A DNA stretch of 64,000 nt from Aplysia californica (lineage: Eukaryota). The stretch is from contig NW_004797763.1 in NCBI RefSeq assembly GCF_000002075.1, positions 447,515 to 511,514 on the forward strand, given 5' to 3'. Below the pieces are notes generated by a model, which was given only the letters and a program-made list of their open reading frames with translations, was not told the origin of the DNA and made no database searches. The position numbers and the translations under genes were made by a program. This document shows, piece after piece, positions 28,158 through 57,804 of the stretch (position 1 is the stretch's first letter; each line of letters opens with the position of its first letter).

Positions 28158-29316
28158 ATGATTGTATGTTGTAGAACTTCTCCCAAATTTATCTCACTGT
28201 ACTTTATTTGGTTTACTGCCATTGCGTGTGTCATTATAAGACACAGCATGAGTCAGTGTCTAAGAGGTTCTGGCCGCATTCCTTGTACAGTTATTGTGGG
28301 TCAAGTTGATATTAAACAAAGTGTTGAGAAACACAAGGCCACGTGTAAATCGTATGGTATGCGTCTTCTAGAATTACTGTCGACTGAAGACAAATATGCC
28401 ATGAAATATTTCTATAAAGTTGCTAAAAATAGTCTGCAAAGTAGGAGCAACACCGTTGGAGTTTTGAGATCCAAAGATTCCGATGATGCATACTATCGGA
28501 GCTTTTCCGGCCCTGCCTTCATAAGTAAGTCCCCTCTATGGCTTGACGGCCAGCCTGATGAGGATGTTCGATGTGTGGCCATTACCAGTGACAAAGTAGG
28601 AGAGGTAGGGTACGAAGACTATTCGTGCGCATCCCAAAAGTATGCGCTCTGTGAGGCCTGTTTTGTGCCCAATCCTACCTGGACGTCCTGCTATTTTCCC
28701 TATAAATGCCAGTTTAGAAACGATTTGGTGTGTAAGATCTTTAGAGAAGCTAAATGTATACCGGTGTTTTTTACCAACAAGACGGACTACCTCCCTTGTC
28801 CGTACAACCGGTACGGCTGTGAGTGCGAGTCCCAGTGTCACTGCGCCGACAACGTGCCGTGCGATCTGTACACGGGAGTATGTCCGGCCGGCTGCAAGAA
28901 AAATTGGCAGGGCCCTAACTGCAATGTCACTAAATGTCGTGTGAACAAGTTCGGGGAGAACTGCGACAAGTTTTGTTTATGTGCAGGCGACCTTCAGTGT
29001 GACTTGGAGACAGGCCAATGCATTAACGGGTGCCCAGAAGGTATGAGTGATCGTTATTGTACCAAGTCTGAGTGTCCGCCCGGCAAGTACGGAGCCGAAT
29101 GTACACTAGACTGTCCTTGTGCCGAGGGGGCAACTTGTGACAAGAATTCCGGTCGGTGCCTCTCAGATTCTTGCCTTATAAAGACTAGAACACTGCCGTT
29201 TTGCACCAACATCTCTGCGTGCGAAGTAGGCACCTACGGTAAAGAATGCGAAGAGAAATGTCCTTGTCTAGATGGAAACGCGTGCGAGAGGAATCTTGGT
29301 ATCTGCAGCAACGAAG
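28158..29316 (+). CDS. Variable exon V1: signal peptide + C-type lectin-like domain (QPD) + about 4 MEGF10/SREC-type EGF repeats
   Basis: Intact ORF with hydrophobic N-terminus. CTLD pattern C..GMRLLEL.STED..W.DGQPD...C...YED.SC.....CE. EGF repeats C....YG..C...C.C.....C....G.C. Donor AAG|GTATGT at 29317, phase 1. Confidence 0.88.
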
Positions 29317-30059
29317 GTATGTGATATTGAAAATACCTCCGTCCCCCCCCCATGTTTTTTTGCTAGCACAACCTTCATACTCCCCCTCCTCCTACATTCC
29401 TCATCCTACCTCACTTCCTCCTCCTGCTCTTCCTCTTTTTCTTCTTCCTCATCATTTTCCTCCTCATAGTCACCACCGTAGTCGTTGTGAGGTATTTAGG
29501 AATAAAGTGCAGTACAGAATCCTTTAGAGAAAATAAACTCATTTCATAGCAGTTTAATGCAATATTGCTTCCTAACGTATTGACCAACCGTACTTTTTTG
29601 GTCTTCTCTCGAGACACATGGGTAAAACACACCCTGTAAAGGGGGGGGGGGGTATCATACATTAAACATACATTTCACTCACAGATGTGAATCAGTGCTA
29701 TTAACTTTGATATATCGTCTTTAAAATCTGCAATTCCCGTTTTCGCCTTCTTTAGATTTTACATATCGCCACCTTACAATAAAAAATTATATCTGCCCAG
29801 TACCTAGTTTTGAGAAAGTTGTTTAAAATAATATTGAGTTACAAAACGTATCAAGCTTTTTACGAATGCAATTCTTTGAATATCTTGATAATGATTCCGA
29901 GTAATCTTACGATTTTGCTAGCGCAGATAAAGCATTTGGTTTCTGACCTCATGGTATTTGTAACTCAAAAAGCCAAAAATGTCAGATAGAACCTTGTAAC
30001 TTTAAGGTAACGTTATTGTCTGTATCAGTATTATGTATGTTTGTCAATCATGATGGAAA

Positions 30060-30580
30060 ATAATAACAATAATAATAATAATAATTTAAAAAATAAAAAA
30101 TTAACAAAAATAAAATAATAATAATAAAAATAATCATAATAATAATAATAATACTATGGCTCTTTTCGTCTATGCAGACGGTCAATTTAGCTTAAGATGG
30201 TCGCAAGGTTGTCTTCATGCAGCTTCTTTCATGGCTAATTCTTCCTGTTTGAAGCGCAGATTCTGTCGCAGTGCTTGCATGTCCGTGTCGTAGATCGAAG
30301 CTCTGTATTTCCGCTGTTTTCCTTTCGTCGTTGGCGCTTCTCAGCCTGGTTGTTTCTAAGGCTGTTCTCTAACATTTTAATTCTTTCCTTTATACTTTTC
30401 CTCAATGTTTTCCGGTCCTCAGCTATTTCTTCTCAGATGTTAACATCTACTCCAAGCTAAGATAAGCTGTTTTTGCAGGTGTCTTTTTTGTACCTCAATT
30501 TTGGACTTCCTCTTTGTCTCTTTCCCTGGGCAAGTTCTCCATAGAGAAGTTCCTTCGGAATCCGGTTGTCATCCATTCTC
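30060..30580 (-). mobile_element. RTE-like LINE 3' fragment with (TAT)n tail
   Basis: Minus-strand translation RMDDNRIPKELLYGELAQGKRQRGSPKLRYK. Confidence 0.7.
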
Positions 30581-30904
30581 TTAATAATGATGATGATAAT
30601 AATAATAATGATGATAATAATAATAATAATAATACCATAATAGTAATTGCTTCATTGCACTTCTGGTAAAATAAATCCACAGATATTTAACTCGAAATAT
30701 AAGATGCTATCTCACACGTGAAATATAAAAAATTGCCTACGTTTCTCCGAGCACTTTCCTCGCCCTCTAACCTACTGTAAGCAAGGTATAGACTTGAATC
30801 ATAACATTCCCAAACCGTGCAATGTTAAGCCAGCCGCTCTTTGCCCTCTGTAAAATCTTCGTCGCAAGTGTGCTAACAATTACAGGCGCCTAAAATTTTA
30901 ATGA

Positions 30905-31860
30905 AGATTGGGGATCCGTCGGACTGGTCCGCACAGATGGCTGTGTTTCCTTTCTCCTCTTTGGATCCCTTTCTCCTTCGATCTACTTAGACTGTGGGAA
31001 CCGCTATTCACCCTATTCTCCCTCTAATTTTCCCTTACAGCGGTTAGGACGGTTGGTGGGTCCAGTGTCAAATTCCCTCCTGTTTTTGCTTCTCCAGCCA
31101 GCTTGTCTGCTCTCTCGTTGCCGGTCCCCCCGCGAGGTCCGGGCAGAAGACCCAGGCCACTCTTTCCAGGCTGCTCTCTCTGATCGTAGCCTTCCAGTCC
31201 ACATGCAGCATCCCTTTCTGTACCTTCTGTAGTGTGCTCATAGAGTCAGTAATGATTACTGCTCCCTGATGGCTTGTTTTCTTGATCCAGTGTAGAACCT
31301 CACTTATGGCTTTTATCTCCATACACATACTTGATGTTGTCAATGCAGTTGTTCCACTTTGCTCCTTCACTACTACCCCGTCAACTGACACTGAAGGCCC
31401 AGCCTGATTTGACTTCTCTGTTGACTGATCCATCCCTGAAGATCATAGTATCTCCATGTACGCTATGCTCTTCTATCAGGGTTTCAATTTCTGCGTTTGT
31501 AGCTCCAAGTGGCCTGTTGCGACATTCTCTACCCAATGTTGCCTTCACTGTTGTGTACTCTCCGAGCGCATCATCGACCACGACCCAATCCCTGCCTCTC
31601 CTGATGTCTTGTATCTGGCTGCACTCGTTGATGGTGTTCGTGGCTTGAGTCATCCATTCTGTGCCCCTCTTTAGCCTTGATGTCATCTGCCGTCCCATTT
31701 TCTTATGTAGAGGGTTCGTCTCGTCTGCGCTGACTCGCAGAAAGGCATGGACGTGTGCCAGTTTGTGCCTCTCGTCTGCACATGGGAAGTCTAGGAAGTA
31801 TCTCATTGCCTCAGCTGAAGTGTCTCGTGTGCACCCCAGGATTGCCCTCATTCATTCATT
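30905..31860 (-). mobile_element. RNase H-bearing LINE fragment
   Basis: MRAILGCTRDTSAEAMRY..., IFRDGSV, EIKAI, IITDSMSTLQ, WVFCP: RT C-terminus plus RNase H motifs across frameshifts. Confidence 0.8.
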
Positions 31861-33989: not shown

Positions 33990-34217
33990 NNNNNNNNNNN
34001 NNNNNNNNNNNNNNNNNNNNNNNNNNNNNNNNNNNNNNNNNNNNNNNNNNNNNNNNNNNNNNNNNNNNNNNNNNNNNNNNNNNNNNNNNNNNNNNNNNNN
34101 NNNNNNNNNNNNNNNNNNNNNNNNNNNNNNNNNNNNNNNNNNNNNNNNNNNNNNNNNNNNNNNNNNNNNNNNNNNNNNNNNNNNNNNNNNNNNNNNNNNN
34201 NNNNNNNNNNNNNNNNN
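33990..34217. other. Assembly gap just upstream of V2 (other gaps: 15401-15719, 16638-16779, 18214-18600, 45058-45209, 49473-49692, 51470-51785, 56986-57348, 58731-59017)
   Basis: Runs of N. Confidence 0.99.
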
Positions 34218-34271
34218 TTAAATCTAATGACTTTGCAACCAACAGTTTCCGTTCGAGAACAGGAATGAAAC

Positions 34272-35427
34272 ATGACTCTAAGTAGAATACCTCCGGGAGC
34301 TGTTTCAATGCTTGACCTATTTTTGTTCGCTGTCGTAATTTGCCACACCGCAATTATTTGTGATGCCAAGTGCTTAGTTGGTTCAGGTCGAATACCTTGT
34401 ACAAGATTTATAACTCATACTAAATTCCCCGTCTTGCTGTCTTCACTCAAAAAGGCATGTGAACGTATTGGTACTCGTCCTTTGGCAATGACGTCTTTGG
34501 AAGAAAAATATGCTTTGAACTACATATTTTCAACCAACAACTTTAAAACTGATACCACTCGGATTGTAGGAGTTGAGAGAATGTTTCCTCATAATGACAA
34601 GTATCAAATTATGGGAGGACCAGATTTCGGAACGACTTCCCCTTTATGGTTACGGAATTATCCGCAACAAAACAACAACTATTGCGTGGGGATTGCACTA
34701 TCCTCCGGCCAGAACACAGTGGGTTATAAAGACGTGGACTGTTCTAAATTAATGACGGGACTCTGCGAGGGCTGCCAGGTTTTCGATCACGTTTTCAACA
34801 ATTGTACCCATGTTGTCAAGTGCAACAAGGCGAATCCAGTTTGTAGAGAGGCTGACCAATACTGTCTTAGAGTGTATTTTTCTAACTTGACGGACTACCT
34901 CCCTTGTCCGTACAACCGGTACGGCTGTGAGTGTCAGTTCCAGTGTCACTGTGCAGAGAACGTGCCGTGCGATCTGTACACGGGAACATGCCCGGCCGGC
35001 TGCAAAGAGAACTGGGAGGGGCGACAGTGCGATCGAACCCGGTGCCCTTTAAACAAATACGGGGCCAGCTGTGAGAAGGGTTGTTTCTGCAAACACAGCA
35101 TGCAGTGTGACGTTATCACAGGTCATTGCCTCAGCGGCTGCCCACATGGAATGAGTGGACCTGGCTGTAATCGGAGCGACAGCTGCGACCGTGGTAAATA
35201 CGGCCCCGAATGTGCGGCAACCTGCGCATGTGCTGCTGGAGCGTTCTGTGACCAAGGCACAGGTCGATGTCTGTCAGATACGTGCTTGGAAAAAAGTAAG
35301 AGCCCGCCGTACTGCAATGATGTCTTCTGTCCTGAGGTAGGCAAATACGGCCCGGACTGCGATCAAAAGTGCATGTGCAAAATGGGTGAGCCATGCCATT
35401 CGATGACCGGTGTTTGTGCCAGTGAAG
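34272..35427 (+). CDS. Variable exon V2: signal peptide + C-type lectin-like domain (YPQ) + EGF repeats (alternative ATG at 34308)
   Basis: Collinear paralog of V1 (CLVGSGRIPC, SPLWLRNYPQ, TDYLPCPYNRYGCEC). Donor AAG|GTATGG at 35428, phase 1, same homologous codon as V1. Confidence 0.88.
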
Positions 35428-35444
35428 GTATGGGATGTTGTGGG

Positions 35445-35507
<63 letters not shown>

Positions 35508-35529
35508 CATCATCATCATCATCATCATC
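35445..35529. repeat. (CAT)n microsatellite just after the V2 donor
   Basis: Read directly from the sequence. Confidence 0.95.
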
Positions 35530-36379
35530 GTTGTCGTCGTCGGTGTTGTTGTGCAGTACAAAAGTATGTAACGAAGAAATTTTGTCAGGTAGGTTAAGTG
35601 TAATCAAAACAACGGTCAACTGAAGGTTTGGTTCAATGCAGTTTGTCATGAAATATATGAATTGTACTTCAGTTCAGGAGCTGATGATGAAGGAAAGTTT
35701 TTTTTTCAAGATCAAGCCTGGAGTCTGTTCGATTTTTTACTTCCAGTATGGAAACTCGTGATCTCAAAGCAAGCTTTGTCCGTGAAGATGAGGAATTCCA
35801 AGACTGCAAATATTTTTTGCAGAGCATGTCAAAATACTCTTTTTAAAACATTACATCATTCGTCGGTGGGACTTCGTATAGATCTATATGCTAGACGTCC
35901 TGTCAATGTCTGAAAAGTCGTATGTCCACTACGCATCCTTTAAGCATCGAAAGGCGGCCAAGAGGAAATGTGGAATTAATCCAGATAAGTGGTCTGTGTG
36001 GTTTCGATCCAATTTCACCACAAACTTTTGTGCACAGCTGAGAGAAGAAAAATAACCACACAACGTCATGAAACAAAAACCAGAAAATGTAGTCTCATCA
36101 AGTCTCACTCCGTGAAAGTTTGTGGTGAAATTGGACAGTGAAAGAGGAAAAGAAGCAGGACATGGCGTACCAGTGGTGCCCACCAACCATCCACAGGGTC
36201 GTCATTACCACTGGTACACCATGTCCTGCTTCTTTTCCTCTTTCACTGTGTTCTTTCTGTCTGTCTTCCATGCTTTTTCCGAACACTTGAAGATCAGCCA
36301 TGGTTTTATTGATTTTTTGCTCCGTACTCAATTAATATCTCCCAACCCATACATATAGATGTCATGAACAACATCGTGC

Positions 36380-36995
36380 ACTTTTCAAACTCGTAATTTT
36401 CCGTACCGCCTTCTGCTGTATAAAGATAAGGCACTTCGCCAGCGCAACCAGAAGACCCGACTCCGATTAAAGCGTTGAGAGATTTTTTTAATCAAGTATG
36501 CCAAGAGGGGAGGGGGGGGGTGTCTGGCATTACTGACTTCATTATGTTGTTGACTTGTATTTAATTCTGTACCAGTAACCCGCTGCATTTCATTGCATAT
36601 ATAAGCACAAGCTGGCCTGGACATGAGCCACTGTGTTCTCTGTGTATCTCCCATGCCTCTACCACGCGTCAGTCCTCCAGCAAACTAGGTTTTTCATTAA
36701 GACTTGCTCAATCCCGAGATCAGTACTCAGTCCAGCTCAGAAGCGATCACTTCGACGCAGAACGTGAAAGCCACACGAGAAGGCATTGAAAACTGATGGG
36801 TGCTGTTCTTCAAGCTGTCTCATCTTCTGAAGGTAGATATAGACCGACTTGGTGTACTGTGAGAGCCCGGCAGCAGCAAGGAAGGGGAGCATATCTTGCA
36901 AGGATTGTAAATGTAACCACCAGTCACCTGTACGTGCGGCTTTAAAGAAGCATTTCAAAATGTCAGTCATATCCATGTACTGAAGCCAGATACGA
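36380..36995 (-). mobile_element. DNA transposase remnant (Academ-like, tentative) between V2 and V3
   Basis: ARTGDWWLHLQSLQDMLPFLAAAG..Y.KSVYIYLQKM..F..GFHVLRRSDRF*AGLSTDLGIEQ..GGLTRGRG. Family assignment is from recollection of the motif; stops and frameshifts present. Confidence 0.55.
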
Positions 36996-38946
36996 AAAAT
37001 AAAGAGAAAGAAACAAAACTATTTTTAAAAAAACAGAAAAAAATGCAGCTAAGAAAATAATTTCAAAAAGAAAAAATACAGTGAACCCTTGTAAAAAGTT
37101 TTACACCTAGTCAAAAAAGTCTGGCGCCTTTACCACTAGGCTACAACGCCAACGATATAAATACTGATGCTAACATTACATACAGTAGGCCTACATATGC
37201 ACTTGATAAAATTGAACGTTCTTTCATTCAACTTCTGTTTGAATACACCCCGAGTTTGTTTGTTTGTTTGTTTGTTTGTTTGTTTGTTTGTTTGTTTGTT
37301 TGTTTAGTCTGCTGGGTAGAAGAGCTCTGATGCAACAATTATAGACCACAGATAAAGTAATTTACTTAATAGTATCAGTTTCCTTTAACATTTCTTCCAA
37401 AACACAGTTGTTTTCACATGGTGCGGCTATCGCGATCATTCCGCCGACGATGTGTGCACACTGCTAATCGAGCCACCGCGAGAGGAAACGGAGTTCGCGT
37501 TTTCAATGAAAATTTAAAAAACTTTCCAATTCGTACATAATTGTACATTTTGAGTATTTTAGATACGATGATTTACTCTATCAACTGTTTTTCTTTTGCT
37601 TTTATTTCCTTGCGATTTCTTAAATCTGCCAGACTATTTCTGGGACTTATTGTGCCACACGTCAACAAACTTCAAAAGGTTTCTGTGCCACAGCTTGCCC
37701 CTCCCAATTCTGACTTTAGGGGTAGATCTATATGTAGGCTATGACGGGATTAGTTAAAACCGACAGGTGCCCTTCCTCTTTGTGGTTAAAAGAAATGTTA
37801 CATGATGCAATCTTTATCTTAAACAAAAACAAAAGCTTCTTTTTGTGATCTTCCAAATCCAGCAAGAAAAAGAGTCACATGTGAGAAATGTCAATTTTGA
37901 TACGCTGATTCAGAATTTAATATTATTTTTACTAAAGAACATAACATTCAATAAGTCTACTAAACAACATTATTATCGTCGGCGGGCCCCATCAATACCG
38001 TCGACACGAGATCATCGCTTGGCCCAGTCGCTGTTCCCCGGACGAATTTTTTTCGCTTTAAAAAAATAGAGTCGCTGTTCTCCGGTCCTCCGAGCCCGTG
38101 GCGGGCAGTGAGTTATTGTCTTATTCTGGATTGAGGGTAAACAAAACTTCGTTGGCTTGTCCCAAATGCTATAGCTTGTCCAACTGTATGTTGTCGTTGT
38201 TCTATTTTTTTTTTTTTCGAACAATTTTTGAGTCAAATAATAACTGAAGATTTCCAAATTCTGAGAATCGCGCACAAGCATGAAGCAGCATAGAAAGGGA
38301 AGGTTCTTATACCTCCAAAATACACATTTTAACTACATGGATTATTGTAAGCCTTGATGTACCGTTAGTCATCACATTTGTAACTCATTGACTCAGTAAA
38401 TTACTATTTAACAAATGAACTTAGAAAACGTTGCCAGCTAATACTCGGGCGAGACAGTCAATAAAGACAAAATATCGGTTCATGCTAAGCAAATTGGTAC
38501 ATTATTATGGTGCAGAAAAACATTGTCAAATACACAACGGAATGTATTGCTTTGTGGATTACTCAAAAAGGTTAACAATGATCAGTAATAGCTAACGGCA
38601 ACACAAGCAATCTTTTCTAAAGTGAAGTGAAGTTGTATTGGGAAATTTTTGGAGTTCACGCCAAATGCCCTTTTTGTGAAAAGGGAAATCCCAAGAAAAC
38701 GTAAAAGTTGTATACGTGCACCGGTAGTGGGAAGTACTATTTCGACACATAAAGGACTCGTACAAATTCTACTCGCAATGCCACTGTTCGTGTGTGGGTC
38801 ACTTGGTTGAGTTGGCATTGCCCAGGTAGTTGTTTCATCTTTACAGAAGGAAAGGGATAACGCTTTTCCCCTTTCGTGGTTAGTTCTAATACTAACTCCA
38901 GTTACATAGGTGTGTAGTGTGTCTTTTGAGGCTTGCCAGCGCAATA

Positions 38947-40072
38947 ATGATTTACCTACTCGGGTTTGCTATCCTACTTTCCTCAAGCATTCTAAAGAGT
39001 GTCACTGCTAGCGACCTTCAGTGTTACAAAGGCGCCGGTCGAATACCGTGTATCCATTTCTTCGCCACCATAAATGAGAGACGCCCTTTTATAAATCAAA
39101 ATAGGATGTGTAACAAATTTGGTATGAAAATGTCGGAATTTCACTCCAAGGAAGATGCAGATTACATCTCTTATGTCTTCAAGATAAATGGACTTCCTGG
39201 CAATGTCCCAAGGTTACTTGGTGCTTTTTCTAAAAAAACACAGTACCCCGGCGTGTACAGGTACATGTCTGGCCCAGCCTTCACCAAAAATTTCCCTTTT
39301 TGGGCAAAGGGTGAGCCGAAGAATCAGAATGACTGTATTCTCTACACGATTGACAGTCAGGGAAATATTGAGTTTAGGACAGTCTACTGCAGCACGAGTA
39401 ACAGAGCGACCTGTGAGGCCTGCTTAATATCGAGACCGATGTACAAGACATGCTCAACTCTGTACGCGTGCCCCAATCTAGGGTTAGTGTGCAGAGAGAA
39501 TCCGGGTCCTGGCTGTGAGAGAGCGTTCTACAGCAACAAGACGGACTACCTCCCTTGTCCGCACAACCGGTACGGCTGTGAGTGTCAGTTCCAGTGTCAC
39601 TGCGCCGACAAGGTGCCTTGCGATCTGTACTCCGGAATATGTCCAGCCGGCTGCGAGAAGAACTGGCAGGGACCGAAATGCGACCAGACGCTGTGCGCGC
39701 TGGGCAAATTCGGTTCGAAATGCGACCAGTTTTGCCTTTGCGCTAACCAAGAGCAATGTGACGTGGAGACAGGGCAGTGCGCCCAAGGGTGTGAAGCAGG
39801 CATGGACGGATTGAACTGTTCTCAGTCCCTCTGCAAACCTGGATTGTATGGCTCTTCGTGTAAAAAAATGTGCCCCTGCGCCGCAGGAGCGTATTGCGGT
39901 TATCGTTCTGGGCGATGCCTCTCAGATATTTGCAAGGAAAAGATGAAAGTCGCCCCTCGCTGCACCGAGTCCTCGTGTCCCGTGGGAAAGTACGGCTCCC
40001 AATGTACCGAAGATTGTTCTTGTGGAGAAAATGAGCCGTGCCACTGGCAGAGCGGCATTTGTGAAACTGCAG
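38947..40072 (+). CDS. Variable exon V3: signal peptide + C-type lectin-like domain (EPK) + EGF repeats
   Basis: First ATG at 38947 reads MIYLLGFAILLSSSILKSVTA. Motifs CYKGAGRIPC, WAKGEPK, TDYLPCPHNRYGCEC. Donor CAG|GTACTA at 40073, phase 1, homologous position. Confidence 0.88.
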
Positions 40073-40988
40073 GTACTAACTCTTTTTATCCAGGCTATGA
40101 GTATACTGGTAACGAGGACCAGTCCGATTCTATACTGTCACGTCAAACCGCTAGTTCTGCTTGTAATTACCAAAATACGCAAATTCGGCGATTTTAGCTC
40201 TGTCTGAATATCCAAATTTTCCAATGAACAGCGGTTTCTTTGTTTTTGATGGGTGTAGAAACTTGAAAGATATCTCGAAAACGCACGTTCACGACCGACA
40301 AAGTACTTCTTGAAGTGGCGCAGGGTTGTAGGGGGAGGGGGGGGGGATGAGACTAATTTGATGAAAGTGACTCTTAATCAAGTTCCATAAATTCCGTTGT
40401 GTGTGATAACATAACTGCCAAATGTCCTTAAAACCTAAGAGTAAATAATGAAAGAAATACCGCACTTTGAAATACACACACTGAATCCCAACTCCTACGG
40501 CGCGGCAGCCTAAGGACGGATACGGAGTCCGTGGGGATACGGCCAGGATAAAAAGATAAAAAGTCACATCATCACTATTGTCTTCGTCGTCGTCTTTATA
40601 AGCACAACAAGAAAAGAAAAACAAATTTGGTGGAGACTTGAGTATTTGAAGTTTTATTGCATAATGAATAATTCATTGCATAAGTTGCGGTGTTAGATAG
40701 ATCAGGATTTATCCTTCGAGTGAAGTTGCCAAGTTGTGATCACGAATTTCAAAGAGTGATTACATTACAACAGTCAATTTCAAAAGTAGGATAGTTCATG
40801 GTCTACCACCGTAACGAGATCCAGACCAACAAGGTTCAAATGACCAGCCAGTTGGACAATATGATCCATTCTAGAGCCTCATATGAAAACAAAAGGAAGT
40901 TGTTAGCGTTCCGCACTGGGGGACTGCAAAGAAACAACATTTGACATTTGGGTCCAGGTCATCAAGCCACCATCAACATTTCCTCCTA

Positions 40989-41041
<53 letters not shown>

Positions 41042-41175
41042 AGCCTAGAAGTAGTAGTAGTAGTAAGCCTAGAAGTAGTAGTAGTAGTAGTAAAAGTAGT
41101 AGTAGTAGTAGTAATAGTAGTAGTAGTAGTAGGAGGCGGAGGAGGAGGATCAGCAGCAGCAGCAGCAGCAGTAGC
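40989..41175. repeat. Compound (AGT)n/(AGG)n/(AGC)n microsatellite
   Basis: Read directly from the sequence. Confidence 0.95.
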
Positions 41176-41814
41176 TCTTTTCAAAGCTCCGACACTTTTT
41201 TAATCAAAACTTTTTAAAATGTGATTTTTTTTTCTCTGGAAATGTGAAAAATAGCTTGGATTTGGGGGGGAGTATGAGAAAAGTAGTAAAACTCGTTACC
41301 GGGGTGGGCAAGTCTGTGATAGGCCTATGTTGGTGGTCTTGTTGTTTTCTTGTTGATGTTGGTGGCGATCCGAGAATTGTGATAAGATTAAGACTAGCTC
41401 TTTTAACCGGTCAGTAATATTAGTCTATCAAGTAAATTGAGTTTTAAACTGATCGTTGATGATTTAAAATTGAGAATTTTGACCGAAGTACTTCATATTG
41501 TATATGAATATCGGTAAATGTATTCAAGTGTACCATTTAAAGCAGGATCCTGGATTCTTCAAATTAAAAAGTATTCTTCAAATCTTTGAAAATAGAATTG
41601 AAAATGATTGAAAAATAACTTTTTTGAAGACTAAAATCAGAAAACGTCGACATCTCGGAATCAGCTTTTTCCTGTTTATAGCGTTTTGTCATAAAACGCA
41701 GTAACAGTCCCCTAGTAAGTAGCTCTAAGGGACTTTACAGGCCTCGCCCAAAACAAAATTTTCCTACCCGTTGGAGTCAGAGTGATGATTGAAAAAAATC
41801 TGGATTGTTTTCCT

Positions 41815-42205
41815 TTACTTCTCTCTCTTGCCCTTTTTAACTCCCAGTGGAGCACAGGCCATCAATAACATTACTCCAGCGAAGCCTGTCCTGAGCATCC
41901 TTTTCAATCTGTTTCCATGATGTCCCCGCTTTTTCAATTTCCGCTTGTAACGCTTGCCTCCATGTCATCTTTGGTCTTCCCTTCTTACGCTTTCCTTGTG
42001 GGTTCCACGTTAAAGCCTGTCTGATGATGCTTGTCGGGGATCTCCTCAGGGTGTGTCTAATCCATTTCCATTTCTTCACCTGAATATCTCCCTTTACTGG
42101 CCTTTGGCTTGTTCTCTCCCACAGTTGAGCATTCGTGACTCGATCGTACCACTTGATCCCCACTATCCTTCGTAGGCATCCATTTACGAAGCTCTGCAGT
42201 TTCCT
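41815..42205 (-). mobile_element. RTE-like LINE 3' fragment
   Basis: IKWYDRVTNAQLWERT..KKWKWIRHTLRR..ALTWNPQGKRKKGRPKMTW. Confidence 0.85.
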
Positions 42206-43417
42206 ATTTTACTTCTAGCCTCGCAAATTTAGATGTAGTGTTATCCTTATGTCTCCCTCCGCGAAATAAACCCTAGACAAAACAATAATAATGTAAGCAT
42301 AGGCAAAGCAAGCAGAAAACGTAAGATTCAAAACTTGAAAAATTAAGAAACTGCAGTTATGTGAGATGTTGTAGTGAGAATATCGATGACCTTGATTTTA
42401 AACTCTACAACCAAAACAGACCAAAGGCTGGGAGCAGCTAAAATATATCGCCGAACTCTGACGTAATCCTGGTTCACTATGGTACCCAGCATTTAATTCA
42501 ATTTGGAGCCAAATAAGAAATGGGCAACATAGAGAGTTGGGTCTACTCTCTACTATAGGGACCCTAGGAGACCGGTGTTTGGCACTTCATTTGGACGCCT
42601 ATGGTGAGCGCGCTTTGCAACGAAGTTTTGACAGGGGGCAAAGAGCGACTTCCATAACATTGCACGGTCTAGGAATATTATGTTTCAAATCTGTACTTTG
42701 CTTACAGCAAGTTAGACAGCGAACATAGTGCGCGGAGCAATTTATGCAAAGGTACATATTCTACGTGTGAGATATCAGCTTATATTTGTGAAATATAAGG
42801 ACTTATTTTATCGGCAGTGAAATGCTAAAACAACTGCAAGAATGGTATACGAGGTATAAGAAATGTGTTCACCTTTGCACCTTTATGGACTTCCTCAGGA
42901 ACATAATAAAAAAACAACAACAACAAAAAACCAAAAAACACTGTCTTCATCATCATCAGGACCATCATTATCATTGCTGCTGTATAGACTGATATAGATA
43001 GAACAATTTTAAGGACACACGGATATTTTGGAAATGTTGTGACAATAGATTTTAAAAGACTTAAATTCTGGGCATGTCGCCTATTTCGGGCTTCATCAGG
43101 AACATAATATTAAAATCATGAACATCATAACGATCATCAGTTGCAAAGTAATCCAAAAGAAAGAATCTGATGGGGTTTGCTCCTTCTCTCCTATCAAACA
43201 TCAATCTTTTTTTTTAAATCTCGGCTTCTCCTTTTCATTGTATGTTACTCACTAGAAACATCTTAAATCTGAATCATCTATCTAACCTATTTGTGTTGTA
43301 AGTACCGTACAACTCTCGCTAAAACTACAATAATGGACGACATACGCTCTCATGAGGACAAAATAAAGTGGTGTTGTTGTTTTTATCCCTTTCTCTCTCT
43401 TTGTTTTTCTTAATTAG

Positions 43418-43567
43418 TGTGTCCCGCTATTGGCAAAGGAGGCCTAGACTGCTACGACGAGTGCCCGAAAGAGTTGACCTGCAAGAGGTGTCTGAGGCTG
43501 AACATGACGAAATGCGGGGAGTGTGTGGAGGGATTCAGGCTCACGCCCAACAACACCTGCGAGAAAG
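43418..43567 (+). CDS. Constant exon C1: membrane-proximal Cys-rich (EGF/furin-like) module
   Basis: Long polypyrimidine tract and attag| acceptor; 150 nt, phase 1 to 1; (V)CPAIGKGGLDCYDECPKELTCKRCLRLNMTKCGECVEGFRLTPNNTCEK; donor AAG|GTGACG. Confidence 0.85.
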
Positions 43568-44157
43568 GTGACGGTCTAACACAGCTTAAGTTGAACCCCT
43601 TCTCTGTGGGTGGTTGGCTGTTTTCTGGATGTGTGTTGCTCCTTCTCTCCTATCAAACATCTATCGTTCTTATCTCTCCTTCTTTTCTTTGCATTTAGCT
43701 CTTTAGTAACACGTCTAATCTATATATGACTACTTGTGTTGCAAGTGTCCTAAAGCTCTGGCTGAATCCCCTTTGCGGCCAGACGTGCTTTATAAGCTAA
43801 AAAATAGCTTACACTTTCGAAAGATGCAGGGAATGAGTTAAAGCGGTTTGCATTCAAGGCAGCACGCCGAAGATAAAAGTCTTGTGTCGTGATGTTATTC
43901 GACATCGACAAGTTCACAGAAAGCTGTACGTTGTCAAGCAGAATATTTTAAATTGTAATGATGTTGAATAGACTTCATAGGATGCATGCTAATGAACTCG
44001 ATTTCGACTCAGTTCAATCGTCTGTACACCGGTACAAGCGTATTAGCAGCACAAAGAGTTTGGTTGAGAGACATTACATTTAGTTCCATGTATTTTGTTG
44101 GGTTGTTGTTTTTTTGTTGGGTGGGGGTGTTGTTGTTGTTGTTGTTGTTGTGGTTGC

Positions 44158-44201
<44 letters not shown>

Positions 44202-46759
44202 GTGACTGGTGCTTTTGGTGGATTATACTTATACTAACCTGGCTTTTCTAAAAACCTGAATTTGAATTCCACTGTCAATGGTTGGCGGTTGCTGTGGTAT
44301 GGTTTGCTCCTCCTTTCCTACAAACCATCTGTCGTCTTTGTCTTTCCTCCTTCTTTGTATGTTTGTTTCTCCCTTGTAACACCTCTAGACTTCGGCACTT
44401 ATATGACATAATTGTGTTCAAAGTGCTGTAAAAAAAAACTTCCCTTGTTTTCAGGCCGCTCCATCTTACTTTGTATTAACTCTTAGTATACGGTAGGCTA
44501 GTCCTCCTTTGTTCGCAGCCAACTTTGTCATCCAAGTTTTCAACATCACAAAGTCCCATATAATTCAGCTACCATTTAACTTTTTTAACTGAGAAGAGGC
44601 CCCATCAAACTCAGCAGAAATGAATGATCCAAGTAGCTGACATAAAGTTTGATAATAGATTAGATGAATTTGATGGAGGTTGACAGATTTTTGTATGACT
44701 GTAAACAACCGAGTGATTCTGTGACCCAGATGAACTGGCTCGCCACATTAATTAAATAAGAGTAGACTTAAATGCAAAAATATAAATAAAATAGGGAGCT
44801 CAAGTTCATCGTATTGTTCCAGGTAAAGAGAAAAGTGATTTAATATTCTTTTCAACCGAAACACATCTTTGTTAAAAACGTATTCTAACATTATAAAGCC
44901 TTAACCGCTTATAATTTTCTCAAACAAATAAAATGCCAATAACTCAGATTGGAAGTTCTTATCATTAAAATTAGAATCTAGACCAATTTAGAAAAAGACA
45001 TGGTTGAGATTTCAAAGATCAAGTAACAAATCTGTTTAACTAGATTAAATCTATATGNNNNNNNNNNNNNNNNNNNNNNNNNNNNNNNNNNNNNNNNNNN
45101 NNNNNNNNNNNNNNNNNNNNNNNNNNNNNNNNNNNNNNNNNNNNNNNNNNNNNNNNNNNNNNNNNNNNNNNNNNNNNNNNNNNNNNNNNNNNNNNNNNNN
45201 NNNNNNNNNTACCTCTTTAAGAAAACTAGAATATATACCTGTTTTATTTTTTATTAACTTTTTCTTTTAAATCGGTTATCGAAAAAGCTAATTCCTTTTT
45301 CCGTTTGAAAACAAAATGTGTTCTTTATCGGTCTATCGTTTTTCAATTAAAACATTTTAATCTTCTTCTCTCTTATTTGTCTTGATCGTATACAAGGGCA
45401 ATGGAGTTACAAAGGTCATATTATGCACTCATCCATGCACACAACAAACGAGAACATAACTATTACATTATTATTACATGTTTTTCAATTGTCAATTTAT
45501 TTATTTATATATTTGTTTATTTATCAATGGGGAGCGGATAAACACTAGCTCGGCAGCGCTTGGCTAAAGAACAACCTCCAGTGGCCACAGGATCACGACC
45601 ACAGCAAGCCACCTAGTTGTAGGATATTTACTGTAGATATCTACTGTGGGCCAACTACACAAAAGTATGGACTGGACTAAACTATATTGTACCCCTGCGG
45701 CAGTGCCACTGACACTCTTTAGGCCTTTCCCAAAAGGGGGGACATTTCACGTTCAAGCGTAGTAGAATTGTAAATGGGCTGACTCATGTCACGCTCATAA
45801 CTGTGCCTGATCTATAACAGGGAACTGCTGCTTTTTCTTTCCTGATCCTTACTATTGCCATTTTCCTCTACTTCTGTTGTATGTTTGTCACTCTTTTGTG
45901 ACCTGTTATTTTGGTGTGCCTTGATATTCGAAGCAGACCTTGTGCTGTTGAAGCTAGAGAGGTGAGCAGTCTAAGTCTGATTCCCTGTAAAGACCCACCC
46001 CTTGGCGCTCATATGACCTTATGCAGTTGCGAGCGCCGTAAAACCCTCTACTATTAAAAAAAAACTATATTAGGACAAAATGCTCGGGAACAGCTGGCGG
46101 GTATTTACACTTCAACCTTTGGGCCAGAGATGACAAATTCAGGTACTCGGAACTAACTTGAAGATGGGTAGGCTCGGCTAGGGTTTTTTTCCCCCGTTTC
46201 AATGACACACCTCAGGATGAGTACAATTGGAGACAGTGTCATTTCGGAATCTGTTAGTGGTGCGCTGCAGGGTGAGTAAAGAACTAACAGATTTCGTCAG
46301 AGTCTGTCGTCGCTCGAAAAAATAAAATTGCAGAAAAGAAGGTCAGTGCAAAAAGAACATTCCGATGGCCACTCGGAAACTCATGCTACACAGGAGGCTG
46401 AGGAGTGCTTAAAAGGAGGGGGGGGGGGTTATGGTGCCATTGTATAAGTCTAGTGTATTTCCCCCAAGGTGCGTCTAGCGAGGGACACCCTGTGTCTGAT
46501 TGCGTTCATGTGGACGGTTGTTTATAGCTGGAAAAAAACCTACGGAACCTAGAACCGAGAAAAAATTACTGAAGGTAGTTCAAAGACCAAGCTAAGTTTC
46601 TATCATGTCAATAAAAGCTTACATTCGCCTAAAAATGTTTAGGAAAATTTAAAACACTATTAGCCGTTTACAATTTTCCCGTTCGTCATTTCAATGCACT
46701 GTTCAAGACATATTTCGTTTTCCATGATATAAAAATTGCTCTTCCGCGGGAAATAAACA

Positions 46760-47184: not shown

Positions 47185-47189
47185 TTGAT

Positions 47190-50134: not shown

Positions 50135-50175
<41 letters not shown>

Positions 50176-50222
50176 TTTAGTTCATTTTCAATTTCAATAT
50201 CTGACTTTCTCTATTCAGTTTT

Positions 50223-50223
<1 letters not shown>

Positions 50224-50308
<85 letters not shown>
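50224..50308. repeat. (CT)n microsatellite; also (TTG)n at 44129-44199 and (TA)n at 62401-62460
   Basis: Read directly from the sequence. Confidence 0.95.
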
Positions 50309-50311
<3 letters not shown>

Positions 50312-52489
50312 TTCTCGCTAGTTAGTTTTTTAAGGGGTGAAGGGTCTATCCTATAACAAAAATTTTCTTTTTTTATTTATCTCTCTCTCTCTCTCTCTCG
50401 ACTCCGCCTCTGTCTCTAGGGCACTCTCTCACCCCCCCACTCTCTCTCGCTCGGTGTCAACAAAGAAAGGGGTGGTCTAGGTAACAGTTTGGTGGAATAG
50501 GTAAGACCAAAGAATGGACGCCGGGCCGGGGGGAGTAGGCGGGGATGATAGCAGAGTTTCTTGAAAATCCTGACACCACGAAAGAGCTGGGGGGCTGAGA
50601 GAAGCTGGGTAATTTACTACATTGTATTCAGTCATAATCTTTTTTCAAAGGACCCCCAGTTTTGTTTCATGCAAAAACTCCAAGTTCCTGTAGGGGACCT
50701 CCTGCTGCCTGGTAACTGAGAATGATCATCTGACACCTTGTTTATGATGAGTTGTAATATTATATATTACCCCCCCCCCCCGCCCCAATAACTTTCTGTT
50801 CATATAAAACTTCTATTAAGATTATTCTACCGACATCTGTGATGTAGCAGTTTGGAGGTGTATCAGTTTGGAGCCTTGCTGTCGCATGCAAGGGGGCCGA
50901 GTTCGATTCCGGAGTAAAGAGAATTTTTTATCAAGTCTTAGTATCTCTGTCTTTCTGCTGAGATGTTGTATCCCTCTCAGGCTGGATCAGATCTGGCACA
51001 TAAGGTTGAAACCCGCCTCCTATAATCTGATCAAAACTGTTTCGATGGGGACGTAAAAACATATCTTCGTTTAAAAAATTTGTCAGCGGGGGTAGGTAGA
51101 AGGCTCTAAAGTACTTAATCGATGCTGAATTTGATACCACCGAATAATTATGTTTGATAACATGTATTCTTTCTTCCTTTTCCGACCGTGTCCGAGTTTT
51201 TGTGAATTTTGTCTTATTTTATTTTATTTTATTTTATTTTATTTTATTTTATCACACCTCTTTTATTTCTTTTTTAAAAAATTTAACAATTTTTAATTTA
51301 TAGATTTTTAAAAACATTGTCAAGAAAAGCAACTCAGATCTTTCTAACGACGAACCGATCCGTTTCACCCCAGGACAACAGGGGCCAACTAAACCATGGG
51401 GCTCAGGTAAGCCAGCGAGCTGAGACGTGGAAGAGGGCAATTTGTTGTTCCCAGTACTCAGGAGTGGGTNNNNNNNNNNNNNNNNNNNNNNNNNNNNNNN
51501 NNNNNNNNNNNNNNNNNNNNNNNNNNNNNNNNNNNNNNNNNNNNNNNNNNNNNNNNNNNNNNNNNNNNNNNNNNNNNNNNNNNNNNNNNNNNNNNNNNNN
51601 NNNNNNNNNNNNNNNNNNNNNNNNNNNNNNNNNNNNNNNNNNNNNNNNNNNNNNNNNNNNNNNNNNNNNNNNNNNNNNNNNNNNNNNNNNNNNNNNNNNN
51701 NNNNNNNNNNNNNNNNNNNNNNNNNNNNNNNNNNNNNNNNNNNNNNNNNNNNNNNNNNNNNNNNNNNNNNNNNNNNNNNNNNNNNTGTTGATTGAACACC
51801 CCTGCTTGAATAATGTCAGAGTCAAAATTTTCTGTTATGCCTCTTTGAATGTTTGAACCTCTCTACGATACTTTTGGTGCACCCGTTGATCACTGTGGCG
51901 GCCTAGGTTTAGAATTGTCCTAACATTTTAGAAATTTGGGGGTAGCTTAGACAAATTTTGTAAAAATTAGTTATCGAAAACTGATTTGCTTTGCTTACAC
52001 ATTTTTTGACTCGTCGACTTAAAATGGGTGCAGGACTTTTTTTGTTTTTACCTCGATTTTGAATGTGTGATAATTTGTTTATCGCTTCTTATCCTAACCC
52101 GCCAGGCATTTCTAATGGAGGACCATGGAATAGCGACAATGCCTTGCCAACATCTCATCTTGTCTAATGTTTTTATTATATCGATACTCAATGTACTCTT
52201 TGTGTGTTTGCAGCTTTAGGAGTAAGTTATAATGATGAATGGAATTTGACTCTCAATAAGATTGGGGATGCGCTTGTAACCACACGTTAAAACGCATGGT
52301 CCTTAAAAAATGTTATTGTGTCATCTCCTTATGACTGTAGACAGTGAACAATTTCGGTCGTTTTTATCCCTTGCCTAGATACATTATTGAAGAGGTCGCC
52401 TCTTGTCCTTTTCTTTAGTTCCATCAATTACACTCCAGATTCTCAAGAGCGTGTATGTAACATGTGTATGTTAGTGCGAGTGCGCGCGC

Positions 52490-52566
<77 letters not shown>

Positions 52567-53625: not shown

Positions 53626-53734
53626 TTGCCGGGTTCGTTGCTGTCTCCGCCTCCAACATGTGGGTGATCATCCTCATCGTCGTCCTACTGATCGTCATTC
53701 TCGTGGCTCTCGTCGACATCTATATCTTCTTGCA
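53626..53734 (+). CDS. Constant exon C2: transmembrane helix
   Basis: Branch point CCTAAC at 53591, pyrimidine tract, cccag| acceptor; 109 nt, phase 1 to 2; (V)AGFVAVSASNMWVIILIVVLLIVILVALVDIYIFL(Q); donor CA|GTGAGT. This frame is not in the supplied ORF track. Confidence 0.87.
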
Positions 53735-53822
53735 GTGAGTCACTTAGTTCTTAGTCTGTCAAACTATCGCTTGTGATTTTTTTTTTAAATTATTTTATTT
53801 ATTATTTTCTTTTTTTTTAATT

Positions 53823-53853
<31 letters not shown>

Positions 53854-54199
53854 GGTTACCCGTAGGTACTACTTTGTTTTCTTGTTATTTCTCTTTTTTT
53901 CTGTCTAACTATGTTCCATGATGACAATCGTGGTCAGAGATGGCTGGAAACCAGTAGTTTTAGGGAAAAGAAGTTCTCTGAATGTTTAGGATTGACCGGT
54001 CTCCAACACGAAGATAATTTATAGATAGGGTGAGTTTCAAAGGCCAGAAAAAATGGGCTTATTGTTCAAAGTGTAGAACTAGACTTCCCTCTATCTCAGA
54101 CAAGTCACAAGGAAACCGTGAAGTTTGTGGATGAGCAGGGAGATAATTCTAGACATAGTGATTCGGCTTTTGATTGCTACGGGCAGAACTGTTTGCGAG

Positions 54200-54800
54200 A
54201 AGACAAATTATGTTAATGGCTTCCTAATGTCAAATTACGTGTAGACAGTGACAATGCAAACCTGACATTTCAGACTGACACGTGTGCAACACTATCAATG
54301 GTGAATCATGCTGTGTTTCGGTCGTTTTGGCCAAAATCGTTTTTAAACTAGAACAATCACCAAAATGTCAGTGTGAATAGGCGGACCAAACTGTTGAACA
54401 CATCCTTCAGCACTGCAAGACTCACAGGGCAATGAGACGGGAAACGTGGCCAACCCCACTGACACTGCAGGAGAAGCTATACGGGCCGACAGATGAACTG
54501 AGCAGGATGGCCCAATTTATGACAGATACCAGACTTCAAGTGTGATGCGATCGAGGAAAAGAAGAAGGCCAAACCGACCTTTAGAAAAGACAGGAAAAGC
54601 TGAAAAAATACACCGGTAGAAAAACTGCACAATTATCATTAAGCTAATGGGAAAGTGGAAGCCAGGTACAAGTCTCAGACAAAAATCCTATCTCTCGTCA
54701 TCTTGGAAGAACAAGACCCCCGCTTGTTAAGTAGAAATTGGCTTCATCAGTGCATGAACTTGAATTGGGAAATGTGGAGCGGTCCGGTGGAATCAAGCGC
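54200..54800 (+). mobile_element. Gypsy-like protease-region remnant interrupted by an I-group LINE 3' end (about 54380-54567)
   Basis: FQTDTCATLS and VEARYKSQTKILSLVIL..PRLLSRNWL...LNW resemble the LTR aspartic protease region. Insert reads EHILQHC...W...L.EKLYG with a gaagaag tail. Confidence 0.5.
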
Positions 54801-57348
54801 TCGACAATATTTGGGCATGTTGAGTTATTGGTATCATTATCACCTGAAAACTTATTCGTTTGCTTTGCTTTCGATTCAACAAATACCCATTTGTCTTGAA
54901 TAGAAGTCGAAATATTTGCGATTGAAGAAGATGAGGTTGCGTGGTTTCAGTAGCAGAATTAGTGAGAAAATGGCTACCAAAATTTGGTAAATTCAATTGC
55001 TAGAGAGTCTTTGAAAACTGAAAAGTACATATGTTCTGCCTTCACTCAACGTTTTTCGGTAACATTCACATGGAAATGTGTTTTAACTGGACAAGTTGTT
55101 GAGCCAAAAAACAAAAATCATCGGACGCCATTTGAAGATTCTGTTGCCGCCTCGAAATGCCTGTTTCTTCGATTTCGTTATTTATTGACGAGCGCCTGAT
55201 TTCACCACGGTGCCTCACACATGTCATTTTCACAGTGAAGGTACAAGACAAGAAAGTGAAGGAAGTCAGATCTCTTGAGACTCTCCTACATGACCACAGA
55301 GATTGTTTATTGACGAGCTAGGAGTCCTTGAAGGTTATAGAAAAAAAAAAACTCGCATTGAGGAAAATGGAGCTCTAACGTTTTGCAAAACTAGACAGAT
55401 GTCTTTTTCCCCTTAGAGAAGGCATACATTTTAGTAAGAGTTTTACGGCACTTACATCATAATAAGGTCATAAAACTACCATAGATTAGAGTTATTACAA
55501 GAGAGTTAAAAAAAACAAAAAAGGAGGAGAGATTCGGACGATTGATGTTTGATAGGAAAAACGGAGCATACCACACCAGAGCACTCACCAACTACTCTCA
55601 GAGAAGGCAGAGAGCAAGAGCTTGATAAACTTGAGCGAGAAAATGTCGTAAAGACTTTTCCGATAGGCCTGTCACTAAAGACACCTTTACACCTTCTGCA
55701 CCCTTCACTTACAACGACGGTTCAAAGCCAAACAACTGTGCCATAAGAACCATCACGCCCAATCAGTTGTGAGTAGGTGGTTGGTGTTTGCTCTGATGTG
55801 GTCTGCTCTCTCTTTCTTATCAAACATATTATACCGTCGTTATATCTCCTCTTTCGCTTTCGTATTTGTTACTCTCTTGTAACACATCTTCGGCCTTTAC
55901 ATGTATATGATCTTATTGTGTTGCAAATGCCGTAAACCACACACTAAAACATAAAAAGAACTGTCGTCTGTAGAATGGATCATTGAGCCGAACACAGGGG
56001 TGTTTTGTATTTTTTAACTCAATTTAAGTACTTAAGGGGCGAGACGGCTACCAGGTTCCGCTGTCGAGAAAACCGGTCCAAGTACAAACTTAGGGGGCAT
56101 GGCATCATCACCAATTGTCGTCATCAAGACCAATAATTGCGACCGATGATTTCCAAACCACCAGCTACACAGACACCACTACCCTCTGCAGGCGTCTGAG
56201 GGGTAGCAGTTAGACGTTTCGCTGTCGCACTCAAGAGACCCAAGTTCAATTCTCTAGTGGGTAGAAAGTGTTTTTTTTAATCGAGTATCTTGGTTTTTCT
56301 GCTGGGATTCACCCCTCTCATCCCGGGTTGGCCCTGCCAGGCAGGGTCAGAAGCCAACCTCCTAAATTATCAAAATTATGTCGGTGACGACGTGAAAATG
56401 CTGAAAAGACCACCATTCAACAAAAGAAAAGAAAATCATCAGACGCCATTTCAAGATCCTGTTGCCGCCTCAAAACCTGGAGAAGCACGAAGTAAGCCGT
56501 GTTGTAACCAAGGTGGAGCCACACCTGACACTGCCCGATCCCCGCACTCCAGCGCAACGCAGATAGACTGTTAGCTATCAGGAAACCTCCACAGAGATGA
56601 GAACCTTACATTTGTGACAATATAAATGTACAATCAGTTATAAACCAGGAGATGGTCTGCGTAATGTCTGGTAAGAATCTATTTTTGTTAGATGTTTTGA
56701 AGAAGGGGGGGGATTGGGGGGGGGGGCGGTTACGCGATAGAGAGTGGGTTTTTTTAATGAAGGGTAGTAACTTTGAATCATCAGTCATTAAATATCTGTC
56801 TGATGAGTGAATGGTTGACTTGATCATCTCTGTAACTGCAATGCTGTCACAACGTAACAATGATCGCGGTGTTACAATAGGTCAATTTTTTCTGCTTTAG
56901 TTAGGCGTGTGCTGAAAATCCAGTATTATATGTTTACCATTGTTAAGCTAGCATCAAAGAAAACGTGTGTATGTGTGTGTGTGTGNNNNNNNNNNNNNNN
57001 NNNNNNNNNNNNNNNNNNNNNNNNNNNNNNNNNNNNNNNNNNNNNNNNNNNNNNNNNNNNNNNNNNNNNNNNNNNNNNNNNNNNNNNNNNNNNNNNNNNN
57101 NNNNNNNNNNNNNNNNNNNNNNNNNNNNNNNNNNNNNNNNNNNNNNNNNNNNNNNNNNNNNNNNNNNNNNNNNNNNNNNNNNNNNNNNNNNNNNNNNNNN
57201 NNNNNNNNNNNNNNNNNNNNNNNNNNNNNNNNNNNNNNNNNNNNNNNNNNNNNNNNNNNNNNNNNNNNNNNNNNNNNNNNNNNNNNNNNNNNNNNNNNNN
57301 NNNNNNNNNNNNNNNNNNNNNNNNNNNNNNNNNNNNNNNNNNNNNNNN

Positions 57349-57386
<38 letters not shown>

Positions 57387-57467
57387 ATTTGTGAGTGTAA
57401 TATATTATGTGTACTCATATATAATATGCGTACGAGTGGAACAATACTATCTGTGATGCTTCCTCAG

Positions 57468-57804
57468 GAAAAAGGATGAGCACTCGGAAGCGAGCCAAGA
57501 TGGAGAGAAGGGACTCGAGGAGCAATCTGAACAAAGTTCTGAGAAACACGAGGGAGCCAGCGATAAGGATGAGGAGGAATCCATGCAGGGCTCCGAGGAT
57601 GAGGAGGGAGACGAGAATCCCCAAACAGGGGAGAAGAAAGAATCCAGCGCATCATCCAAGAAGCACTCCAGCGCATCATCCAAGAAGCACTCCAGCGCAT
57701 CATCCAAGAAACACTCCAGCGCATCATCCAAGAAGCAGTCCAACGCGTCTAAGAAGCAGTCCAACGTGTCTAAGATGTCCACAGTCTCAGAGAATCTTGA
57801 GTAG
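57468..57804 (+). CDS. Constant exon C3: cytoplasmic tail (acidic, then Ser/Lys-rich repeats), stop TAG
   Basis: Acceptor cttcctcag|G, phase 2, completes CAG. Reads KKDEHSEASQDGEKGLEEQSEQ...SSASSKKH repeats...SENLE*. In frame with ORF 57583-57804; KK follows the transmembrane helix as a stop-transfer. Confidence 0.82.
57643..57759 (+). repeat. Coding 24-nt tandem repeat x4 (SSASSKKH/Q) plus a 21-nt variant unit in exon C3
   Basis: tccagcgcatcatccaagaagcac at 57643, 57667, 57691 and 57715, with single-base variants in the last two. Confidence 0.92.

Follow-up and report, generated by a model that had tools for sequence, protein, structure and literature searches.

Introduction

Genes in which several variable first exons are joined to one set of shared downstream exons are well known, and the clustered protocadherins (Pcdh), UGT1A and the sDscam genes are described examples (PMC4835542, PMC1885805). 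The alpha and beta sDscam genes of chelicerates have tandem 5' cassettes in an invertebrate, alternative promoters, and constant exons that encode extracellular domains, a transmembrane segment and a tail (PMC4835542). In the Pcdh alpha and gamma clusters, tandem paralogous first exons of the same orientation encode a signal peptide and an ectodomain and are spliced to shared 3' exons, and the first exons lying downstream of the one in use are removed as intron. In UGT1A, the N-terminal half of the protein, which recognises the substrate, comes from the variable first exons, and the shared exons encode the C-terminal half including the membrane anchor. The rule in the Pcdh and UGT1A clusters is that the cap-proximal donor joins the first acceptor. 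Here we describe a locus of Aplysia californica that resembles these systems in the layout of its exons. It lies in a stretch of 64,000 nucleotides (nt) of contig NW_004797763.1 (positions 447,515 to 511,514, forward strand; assembly GCF_000002075.1), which we call the window and in whose numbering its exons are given. Three exons, V1, V2 and V3, each encoding a head with a C-type lectin-like domain (CTLD) and an array of EGF repeats, precede the constant exons C1, C2 and C3. We consider it very likely that they belong to a single gene built on the multiple-variable-first-exon plan, in which the heads are swapped on a common stalk end, anchor and tail.

Results

Organization of the locus

The three heads stand in tandem on the + strand (Table 1). 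Their coding parts of 1159, 1156 and 1126 nt are open from ATG to donor, each has a length of 3n+1, each starts with its own ATG and signal peptide, and the donors are all of phase 1 and lie at a homologous codon. Mutual tblastn matches cover the full length of the heads at 40–44% identity (E 1e-80 to 1e-98), well beyond chance. These results confirm the proposal of the first-pass annotation, made from the letters of the DNA, that V1–V3 are intact paralogs, each with an ATG, a signal peptide and a phase-1 GT donor of its own.

The constant exons have pyrimidine-rich AG acceptors (context ...TTAATTAG for C1, ...CCCCAG for C2 and ...CCTCAG for C3) and GT donors, and their phases run 1-1-2. The coordinates and phases of C1, C2 and C3 had been given correctly in the first-pass annotation, which overlooked a 33-nt cassette exon at 51374–51406, here called Cm. 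C3 contains a 24-nt tandem repeat (4.3 copies, 95% match, 57643–57746) encoding SSASSKKH repeats, and judging from the sequence this may be a length-polymorphic, phosphorylatable segment of the tail. The shared tail has no tyrosine and hence no NPxY/YxxL motifs.

A (CAT)28 microsatellite was also seen at 35445–35529, starting 18 nt past the V2 donor, and similar trinucleotide arrays lie behind V1 (30059–30153) and V3 (40989–41132).

RefSeq models of V1 and V2

Comparison with RefSeq proteins showed that the locus is annotated as one gene, "cell death abnormality protein 1", with isoforms X1 and X3 starting from V1 and isoform X2 from V2, all sharing C1, C2 and C3. V1 is 100% identical to residues 1–386 of XP_005105859.1 (isoform X3) and XP_005105855.1 (isoform X1), and V2 is 100% identical to residues 1–385 of XP_005105856.1 (isoform X2). 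Isoform X3 (584 aa) is composed of V1+C1+C2+C3 and equals exactly the V1 product predicted from the DNA. Isoform X1 (595 aa) has the same composition plus the 11 residues of Cm, and isoform X2 (594 aa) consists of V2+C1+11 Cm residues+C2+C3. Cm is thus included in isoforms X1 and X2; it is left out of isoform X3 and of the RNA contig of sequencing run X4 described below.

Public annotation therefore already has V1 and V2 as alternatives for the first exon of a single gene, and the expectation that automated annotation would miss the design was wrong; only a model of V3 was not found. In the protein database searched, no protein was identical to V3, the best matches being the isoforms built on V1 (43%) and on V2 (40%). 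A V3 isoform seems to be missing from the RefSeq gene; V3 is expressed, as the following results show.

RNA evidence for a third head

Reads and contigs of sequencing runs were placed on positions 38600–44599 only. The runs X4 (2011) and X5 (2022), from different studies, contain about one-quarter of the sequence words of the stretch, which is its exonic share. In both, V3 and C1 were covered and the unique intron sequence was empty, and the two runs thus behave as cDNA. One contig in each run contained the V3>C1 junction, placed at 40070>43416; an equally fitting shift of two places gives a GT..AG junction at 40072>43418, the position predicted for it in advance. The V3 contigs begin at 38765 and 38791, that is 156–182 nt upstream of the ATG, are collinear with the genome and show no upstream splice, and the motif ATAAAG is found at about 38749, just upstream of these starts. 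V3 is a first exon.

The C1>C2 junction (43567>53626), likewise predicted, was seen directly in run X4, in which the loose end of the C1 contig equals 53633–53662 exactly, with Cm skipped. A contig end in the same run matches the V1 letters 28745–28774 exactly, and the sample that expresses V3 therefore also expresses V1. Taken with the RefSeq models of V1 and V2, the V3>C1 junction bears out the proposal that three variable 5' exons are used on one constant set.

The depth of the C1 contig was 84.5 and 96.7 in runs X4 and X5, as compared with 27 and 17–21 for V3. C1 is thus 3–5 times as deep as V3, and therefore most of the C1-bearing RNA begins at exons other than V3. The C1 contig breaks at the acceptor (end 43416), and the V3 contig overlaps it by 30 letters, a pattern expected of a de Bruijn graph of k=31 where several upstream exons converge.

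Several observations weigh against the single-gene reading or limit it. The V1>C1 and V2>C1 junctions were not observed directly in reads; their support comes from the RefSeq models together with the depth and graph-break evidence. The label of runs X4 and X5 says no more than 'RNA? (a guess)', and that they are RNA is deduced from the splice joint and from the lack of coverage of unique intron sequence. The polyA RNA run X13 (raw reads), which is uninformative on splicing, gave no V3 or C1 coverage, so expression is tissue-restricted. No common 11-mer (with at most one mismatch) was found as a shared promoter motif in the 800-nt regions upstream of V1–V3, the V2 region being partly in an assembly gap. 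The upstream region of V2 falls in this gap, so its promoter and 5' untranslated region (UTR) may be unread.

Run X12 contained only repeats and flanks of the stretch. Three intronic fragments (41820–42205, 43000–43300 and 43636–43690) had contig depths of between 130 and 68,000 per 200-nt bin in each of the three contig runs; they were also present in the polyA raw reads, with many loose ends and joints of the 'goes back about 40' type, and had no Rfam match. The fragments probably represent an abundant repeat that is transcribed.

Search for private 3' exons

Low-stringency tblastn found no second copy of C1, C2 or C3 in the window, and a search of the whole 927-Mb assembly likewise returned one copy of each; the other C1-like matches in the genome-wide search were weak only and located at paralogous genes. 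In agreement with the first-pass annotation, no C1-, C2- or C3-like exon was found by low-stringency tblastn in the gap-free V2–V3 interval (35428–38946), and none in the V1–V2 interval aside from one gap of an estimated 228 nt. Since the V2–V3 interval is free of gaps and of C-like exons, V2 must splice across V3 to gain a membrane anchor. A hydropathy scan for a private transmembrane exon in the V1–V2, V2–V3 and V3–C1 intervals returned only simple-repeat or weak segments, none of them C2-like; the candidates in the V2–V3 interval were a (CAT)n repeat and weak segments. No Rfam family was found in a scan of 28000–58000 of the window.

The window contains nine runs of N, five of which fall within the locus. 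One of them (33990–34217) ends 54 nt short of the V2 ATG. Two codons ahead of this ATG there is an in-frame TGA, and the V2 reading frame is thus independent of the gap. The remaining four are intronic (C1–Cm, Cm–C2 and C2–C3), and because an RNA contig passes directly from C1 to C2, no obligatory exon is hidden between these two.

A scaffold with many gaps, one of them between V1 and V2, could in principle give a false picture of the locus: near-identical constant exons of each head could have been collapsed or lost, and the three heads would then belong to ordinary tandem genes. We regard such an assembly artefact as extremely unlikely. The V2–V3 interval holds neither a gap nor a C-like exon, the V1–V2 gap of estimated size 228 nt is too small for three exons with their introns, and there is one copy of each constant exon genome-wide. 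Furthermore, the heads are just 40–44% identical, and identical constants behind them would require selective homogenisation.

The possibility exists that V1 and V2 are essentially independent genes, encoding for example secreted lectin-EGF proteins that end at an intronic polyA site, and that their joining to C1 is minor read-through which has been promoted to isoforms. The lack of direct reads over V1>C1 and V2>C1 would fit this, as would the hydrophobic open segments in the V1–V2 and V2–V3 intervals, though none of these is C2-like. We nevertheless consider it very unlikely, as (i) the C1 depth exceeds that of V3 in two runs, (ii) the phase-1 donor has been kept at the homologous codon in V1–V3, as in the readable ones among the nine members of the gene family described below, (iii) neither an in-frame continuation nor a C-like exon lies behind V1 or V2, and (iv) the same skipping of a proximal head is seen at a paralogous locus, C816. 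The single gene with exchangeable heads thus remains the reading that we follow below.

Domain structure of the heads

Pfam searches with single V exons did not return Lectin_C and gave just a sub-threshold match to a stabilin-type EGF domain; recognition of the CTLD required a family profile and a fold search. When a head profile made from nine Aplysia family members was compared with solved structures, it matched the CTLDs of the mannose-receptor family, DEC-205, PLA2R and DCIR with E values of 1e-23 to 1e-16. The AlphaFold model of V1 (mean pLDDT 72) matched DCIR2, mincle and langerin with a target TM of 0.55–0.69, and the lectin-EGF part of E-selectin was also among its fold matches. The EGF part of the model resembles the N-terminal fragment of human SCARF1 (8hna). 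The head is a genuine CTLD, as the first-pass annotation had suggested, and the RefSeq names given to members of this family (CED-1, MEGF6, MEGF10) are misleading: the family is defined by its CTLD, and the names reflect similarity of the EGF repeats only.

At the EPN/QPD position, V1 has QPD, V2 YPQ and V3 EPK, and the residues at the WND position are YED, YKD and FRT, respectively. A plausible calcium-sugar site would be kept in V1 only, the loop being modelled at low confidence. The module encoded by C1 gave no significant match in Pfam or among solved structures and is an unclassified 8-Cys module.

The identity between V1, V2 and V3 was unevenly distributed, amounting to 27–35% in the CTLD, about 25% in the linker and 56–59% in the EGF array. 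The dN/dS ratio of the EGF part is approximately 0.25 among V1–V3; synonymous sites in the CTLD are saturated, making dN/dS there uninformative. By these sequence comparisons the lectin head diverges about twice as fast as the EGF stalk, which is the pattern expected if the heads were selected for different ligands.

Paralogous loci

The genome contains at least nine exons that encode a signal peptide, a CTLD and an EGF array in a single exon, and the readable members of these nine all have a phase-1 donor directly after the last EGF. Two further loci carry more than one head (Table 1). On the minus strand of C816, the RefSeq protein "MEGF6 isoform X1" (P0007, 542 aa) starts from the distal head, splicing over the proximal head that lies 17 kb downstream, and "MEGF10 isoform X2" (P0160, 540 aa) starts from the proximal head. 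The last 152 residues of P0007 and P0160 are identical; between their heads, identity is about 21% for the CTLD and 73% for the EGF part. RefSeq here gives two different names to isoforms of one gene.

In a maximum-likelihood tree the heads clustered by locus, with supports of 99/99, 96/95 and 97/96, and therefore each locus had its own, independent duplication of exon 1. The nearest homolog in Biomphalaria, XP_055872633.1 (567 aa, about 30% identical; B. glabrata OX365790.1, L042:10001–11704), is intronless and has its own C-terminal hydrophobic anchor. It is a single gene, and no tandem heads were found within 10 kb of it; the design is thus not shown outside Aplysia.

Table 1. Exons of the lectin-EGF receptor gene in the window, and related loci elsewhere in the Aplysia californica genome. 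A slash marks an exon boundary.
Feature	Coordinates	Strand	Description	Evidence or status
V1	28158..29316	+	Alternative first coding exon: signal peptide, CTLD (QPD loop), Cys-rich linker, EGF array; phase-1 donor AAG/GTATGT
V2	34272..35427	+	Alternative first coding exon, domain order as in V1; phase-1 donor AAG/GTATGG
V3	38765..40072	+	Alternative first exon; 5' UTR start ~38765-38791, ATG 38947 (coding 38947-40072); phase-1 donor CAG/GTACTA
C1	43418..43567	+	Shared constant exon, 150 nt, phase 1-1; 49-aa 8-Cys juxtamembrane module	In all RefSeq isoforms
Cm	51374..51406	+	Optional 33-nt cassette microexon, phase 1-1; 11 aa, GQQGPTKPWGS	RefSeq peptide match; flanks ...CCCCAG/ and /GTAAGC
C2	53626..53734	+	Shared transmembrane exon, 109 nt, phase 1-2	Hydrophobic segment, splice sites
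C3	57468..57804	+	Shared cytoplasmic tail exon ending TAG; acidic, Ser/Lys-rich	In all RefSeq isoforms
C816, minus strand	147600-178349	-	2 heads, one shared C1-like exon and one transmembrane/tail exon	RefSeq models
C93	1428749-1491598	+	2 heads 48 kb apart; constants (C1, transmembrane, tail; 1487329-1491598) found only behind the second; gaps after the first	Candidate
C816, plus strand		+	1 head, ordinary single-head gene with own constants
C827			1 head, ordinary single-head gene with own constants

Neighbouring features

Upstream of the locus, two open frames on the minus strand (22340–23254 and 24300–24578) resemble the C-terminal reverse-transcriptase/RNase H junction of a non-LTR retrotransposon, with the motif YTDGSA, and gave no Pfam match at E 0.01.

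Discussion

The findings that are new here are an RNA-supported third head, the identity of the head as a CTLD, the return of the design at another locus through a separate duplication of exon 1, the divergence of head versus stalk, and the microexon. A full-text search of the literature gave no account of this gene, nor of any lectin-EGF receptor with variable first exons.

Most likely, each V exon has its own promoter, those of V1 and V2 being postulated. Transcription starting at one head would produce a pre-mRNA in which the phase-1 donor of that V exon is the sole cap-adjacent 5' splice site. This donor would join the first available acceptor, which is that of C1, and any V exons further downstream, having no acceptor, would be removed as part of the intron. 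With C1, the optional Cm, C2 and C3 common to all forms, the products would be type I membrane receptors that differ in their ligand-binding head. The choice of head is most likely regulated in a tissue- or state-specific manner and not random, and the heads would recognise glycans or other ligands, each with a different specificity. A part in immune, self/non-self or gamete recognition, as put forward in the first-pass annotation, is conceivable.

It is also conceivable that the same structure is operated by a stochastic choice of head in each cell, as in Pcdh and sDscam, giving cells surface identities for self/non-self, neuronal or gamete recognition. The architecture is formally identical to that of the clustered protocadherins and sDscam and is found again at a paralogous locus, one sample expresses at least V1 and V3 together at similar depths, and the head evolves faster than the stalk. 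We nevertheless judge a per-cell choice unlikely, since the heads are few (three here and two at C816) and provide little scope for combinations, the regions upstream of V1–V3 showed no conserved promoter element, and CTLD heads point to binding of a ligand or glycan, not to homophilic matching; different cell types explain the co-expression in a bulk sample equally well. A wider form of the idea, that loci with exchangeable lectin heads evolved several times in one Aplysia family (C493 with three heads, C816 with two, possibly C93 with two) and have their promoters picked cell by cell, is in our view improbable. If it were true, haemocytes or neurons would acquire individual recognition repertoires, and the family would be a lectin-based counterpart of the clustered protocadherins or sDscam.

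With regulated use of alternative first exons as the preferred reading, a molluscan lectin-EGF receptor becomes one of the few genes in which variable first exons, joined to shared anchor exons, diversify an entire recognition ectodomain. The layout arose as exon 1 was duplicated repeatedly, at paralogous loci that are separate from one another. With two or three heads the scale is small, and so far nothing beyond ordinary alternative-promoter regulation has been shown.

Among membrane proteins, CED-1/Draper/MEGF10 and SCARF1 (SREC-I) are similar in being type I membrane proteins with arrays of EGF-type repeats, and they are the source of the RefSeq names. Unlike in CED-1/Draper/MEGF10, a CTLD here replaces the EMI domain at the N-terminus and the tail is devoid of tyrosine, and the likeness is one of repeat type only. 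The receptors of CTLD group XIV (thrombomodulin, CD93, CLEC14A and CD248) and the selectins are similar in domain order, as they too begin with a CTLD and continue with EGF repeats, a transmembrane segment and a short tail; these are, however, vertebrate genes without alternative head exons.

As to gene architecture, the variable exon of Pcdh includes the transmembrane segment, leaving only cytoplasmic sequence to the constant exons, whereas here both the final extracellular module and the transmembrane segment are encoded by constant exons. The Pcdh clusters have 14–22 variable exons, a conserved promoter element and a CTCF-dependent stochastic choice, as against three exons and no shared element found at this locus, and the cadherin repeats of Pcdh and the CTLD and EGF domains belong to unrelated families. 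In sDscam, a larger ectodomain receives one or two of its Ig domains from a cassette, and there are approximately 50–100 cassettes, whereas the three heads described here each constitute nearly the whole ectodomain. The combinatorial capacity of three heads is far below that of Pcdh or sDscam. UGT1A differs in encoding an enzyme of the endoplasmic reticulum and not a surface receptor, in having 9–13 first exons and in its unrelated fold. With a tissue-regulated promoter for each first exon and a deterministic regulation, UGT1A is nevertheless the closest analogy for a recognition part that is swapped on a common anchor.

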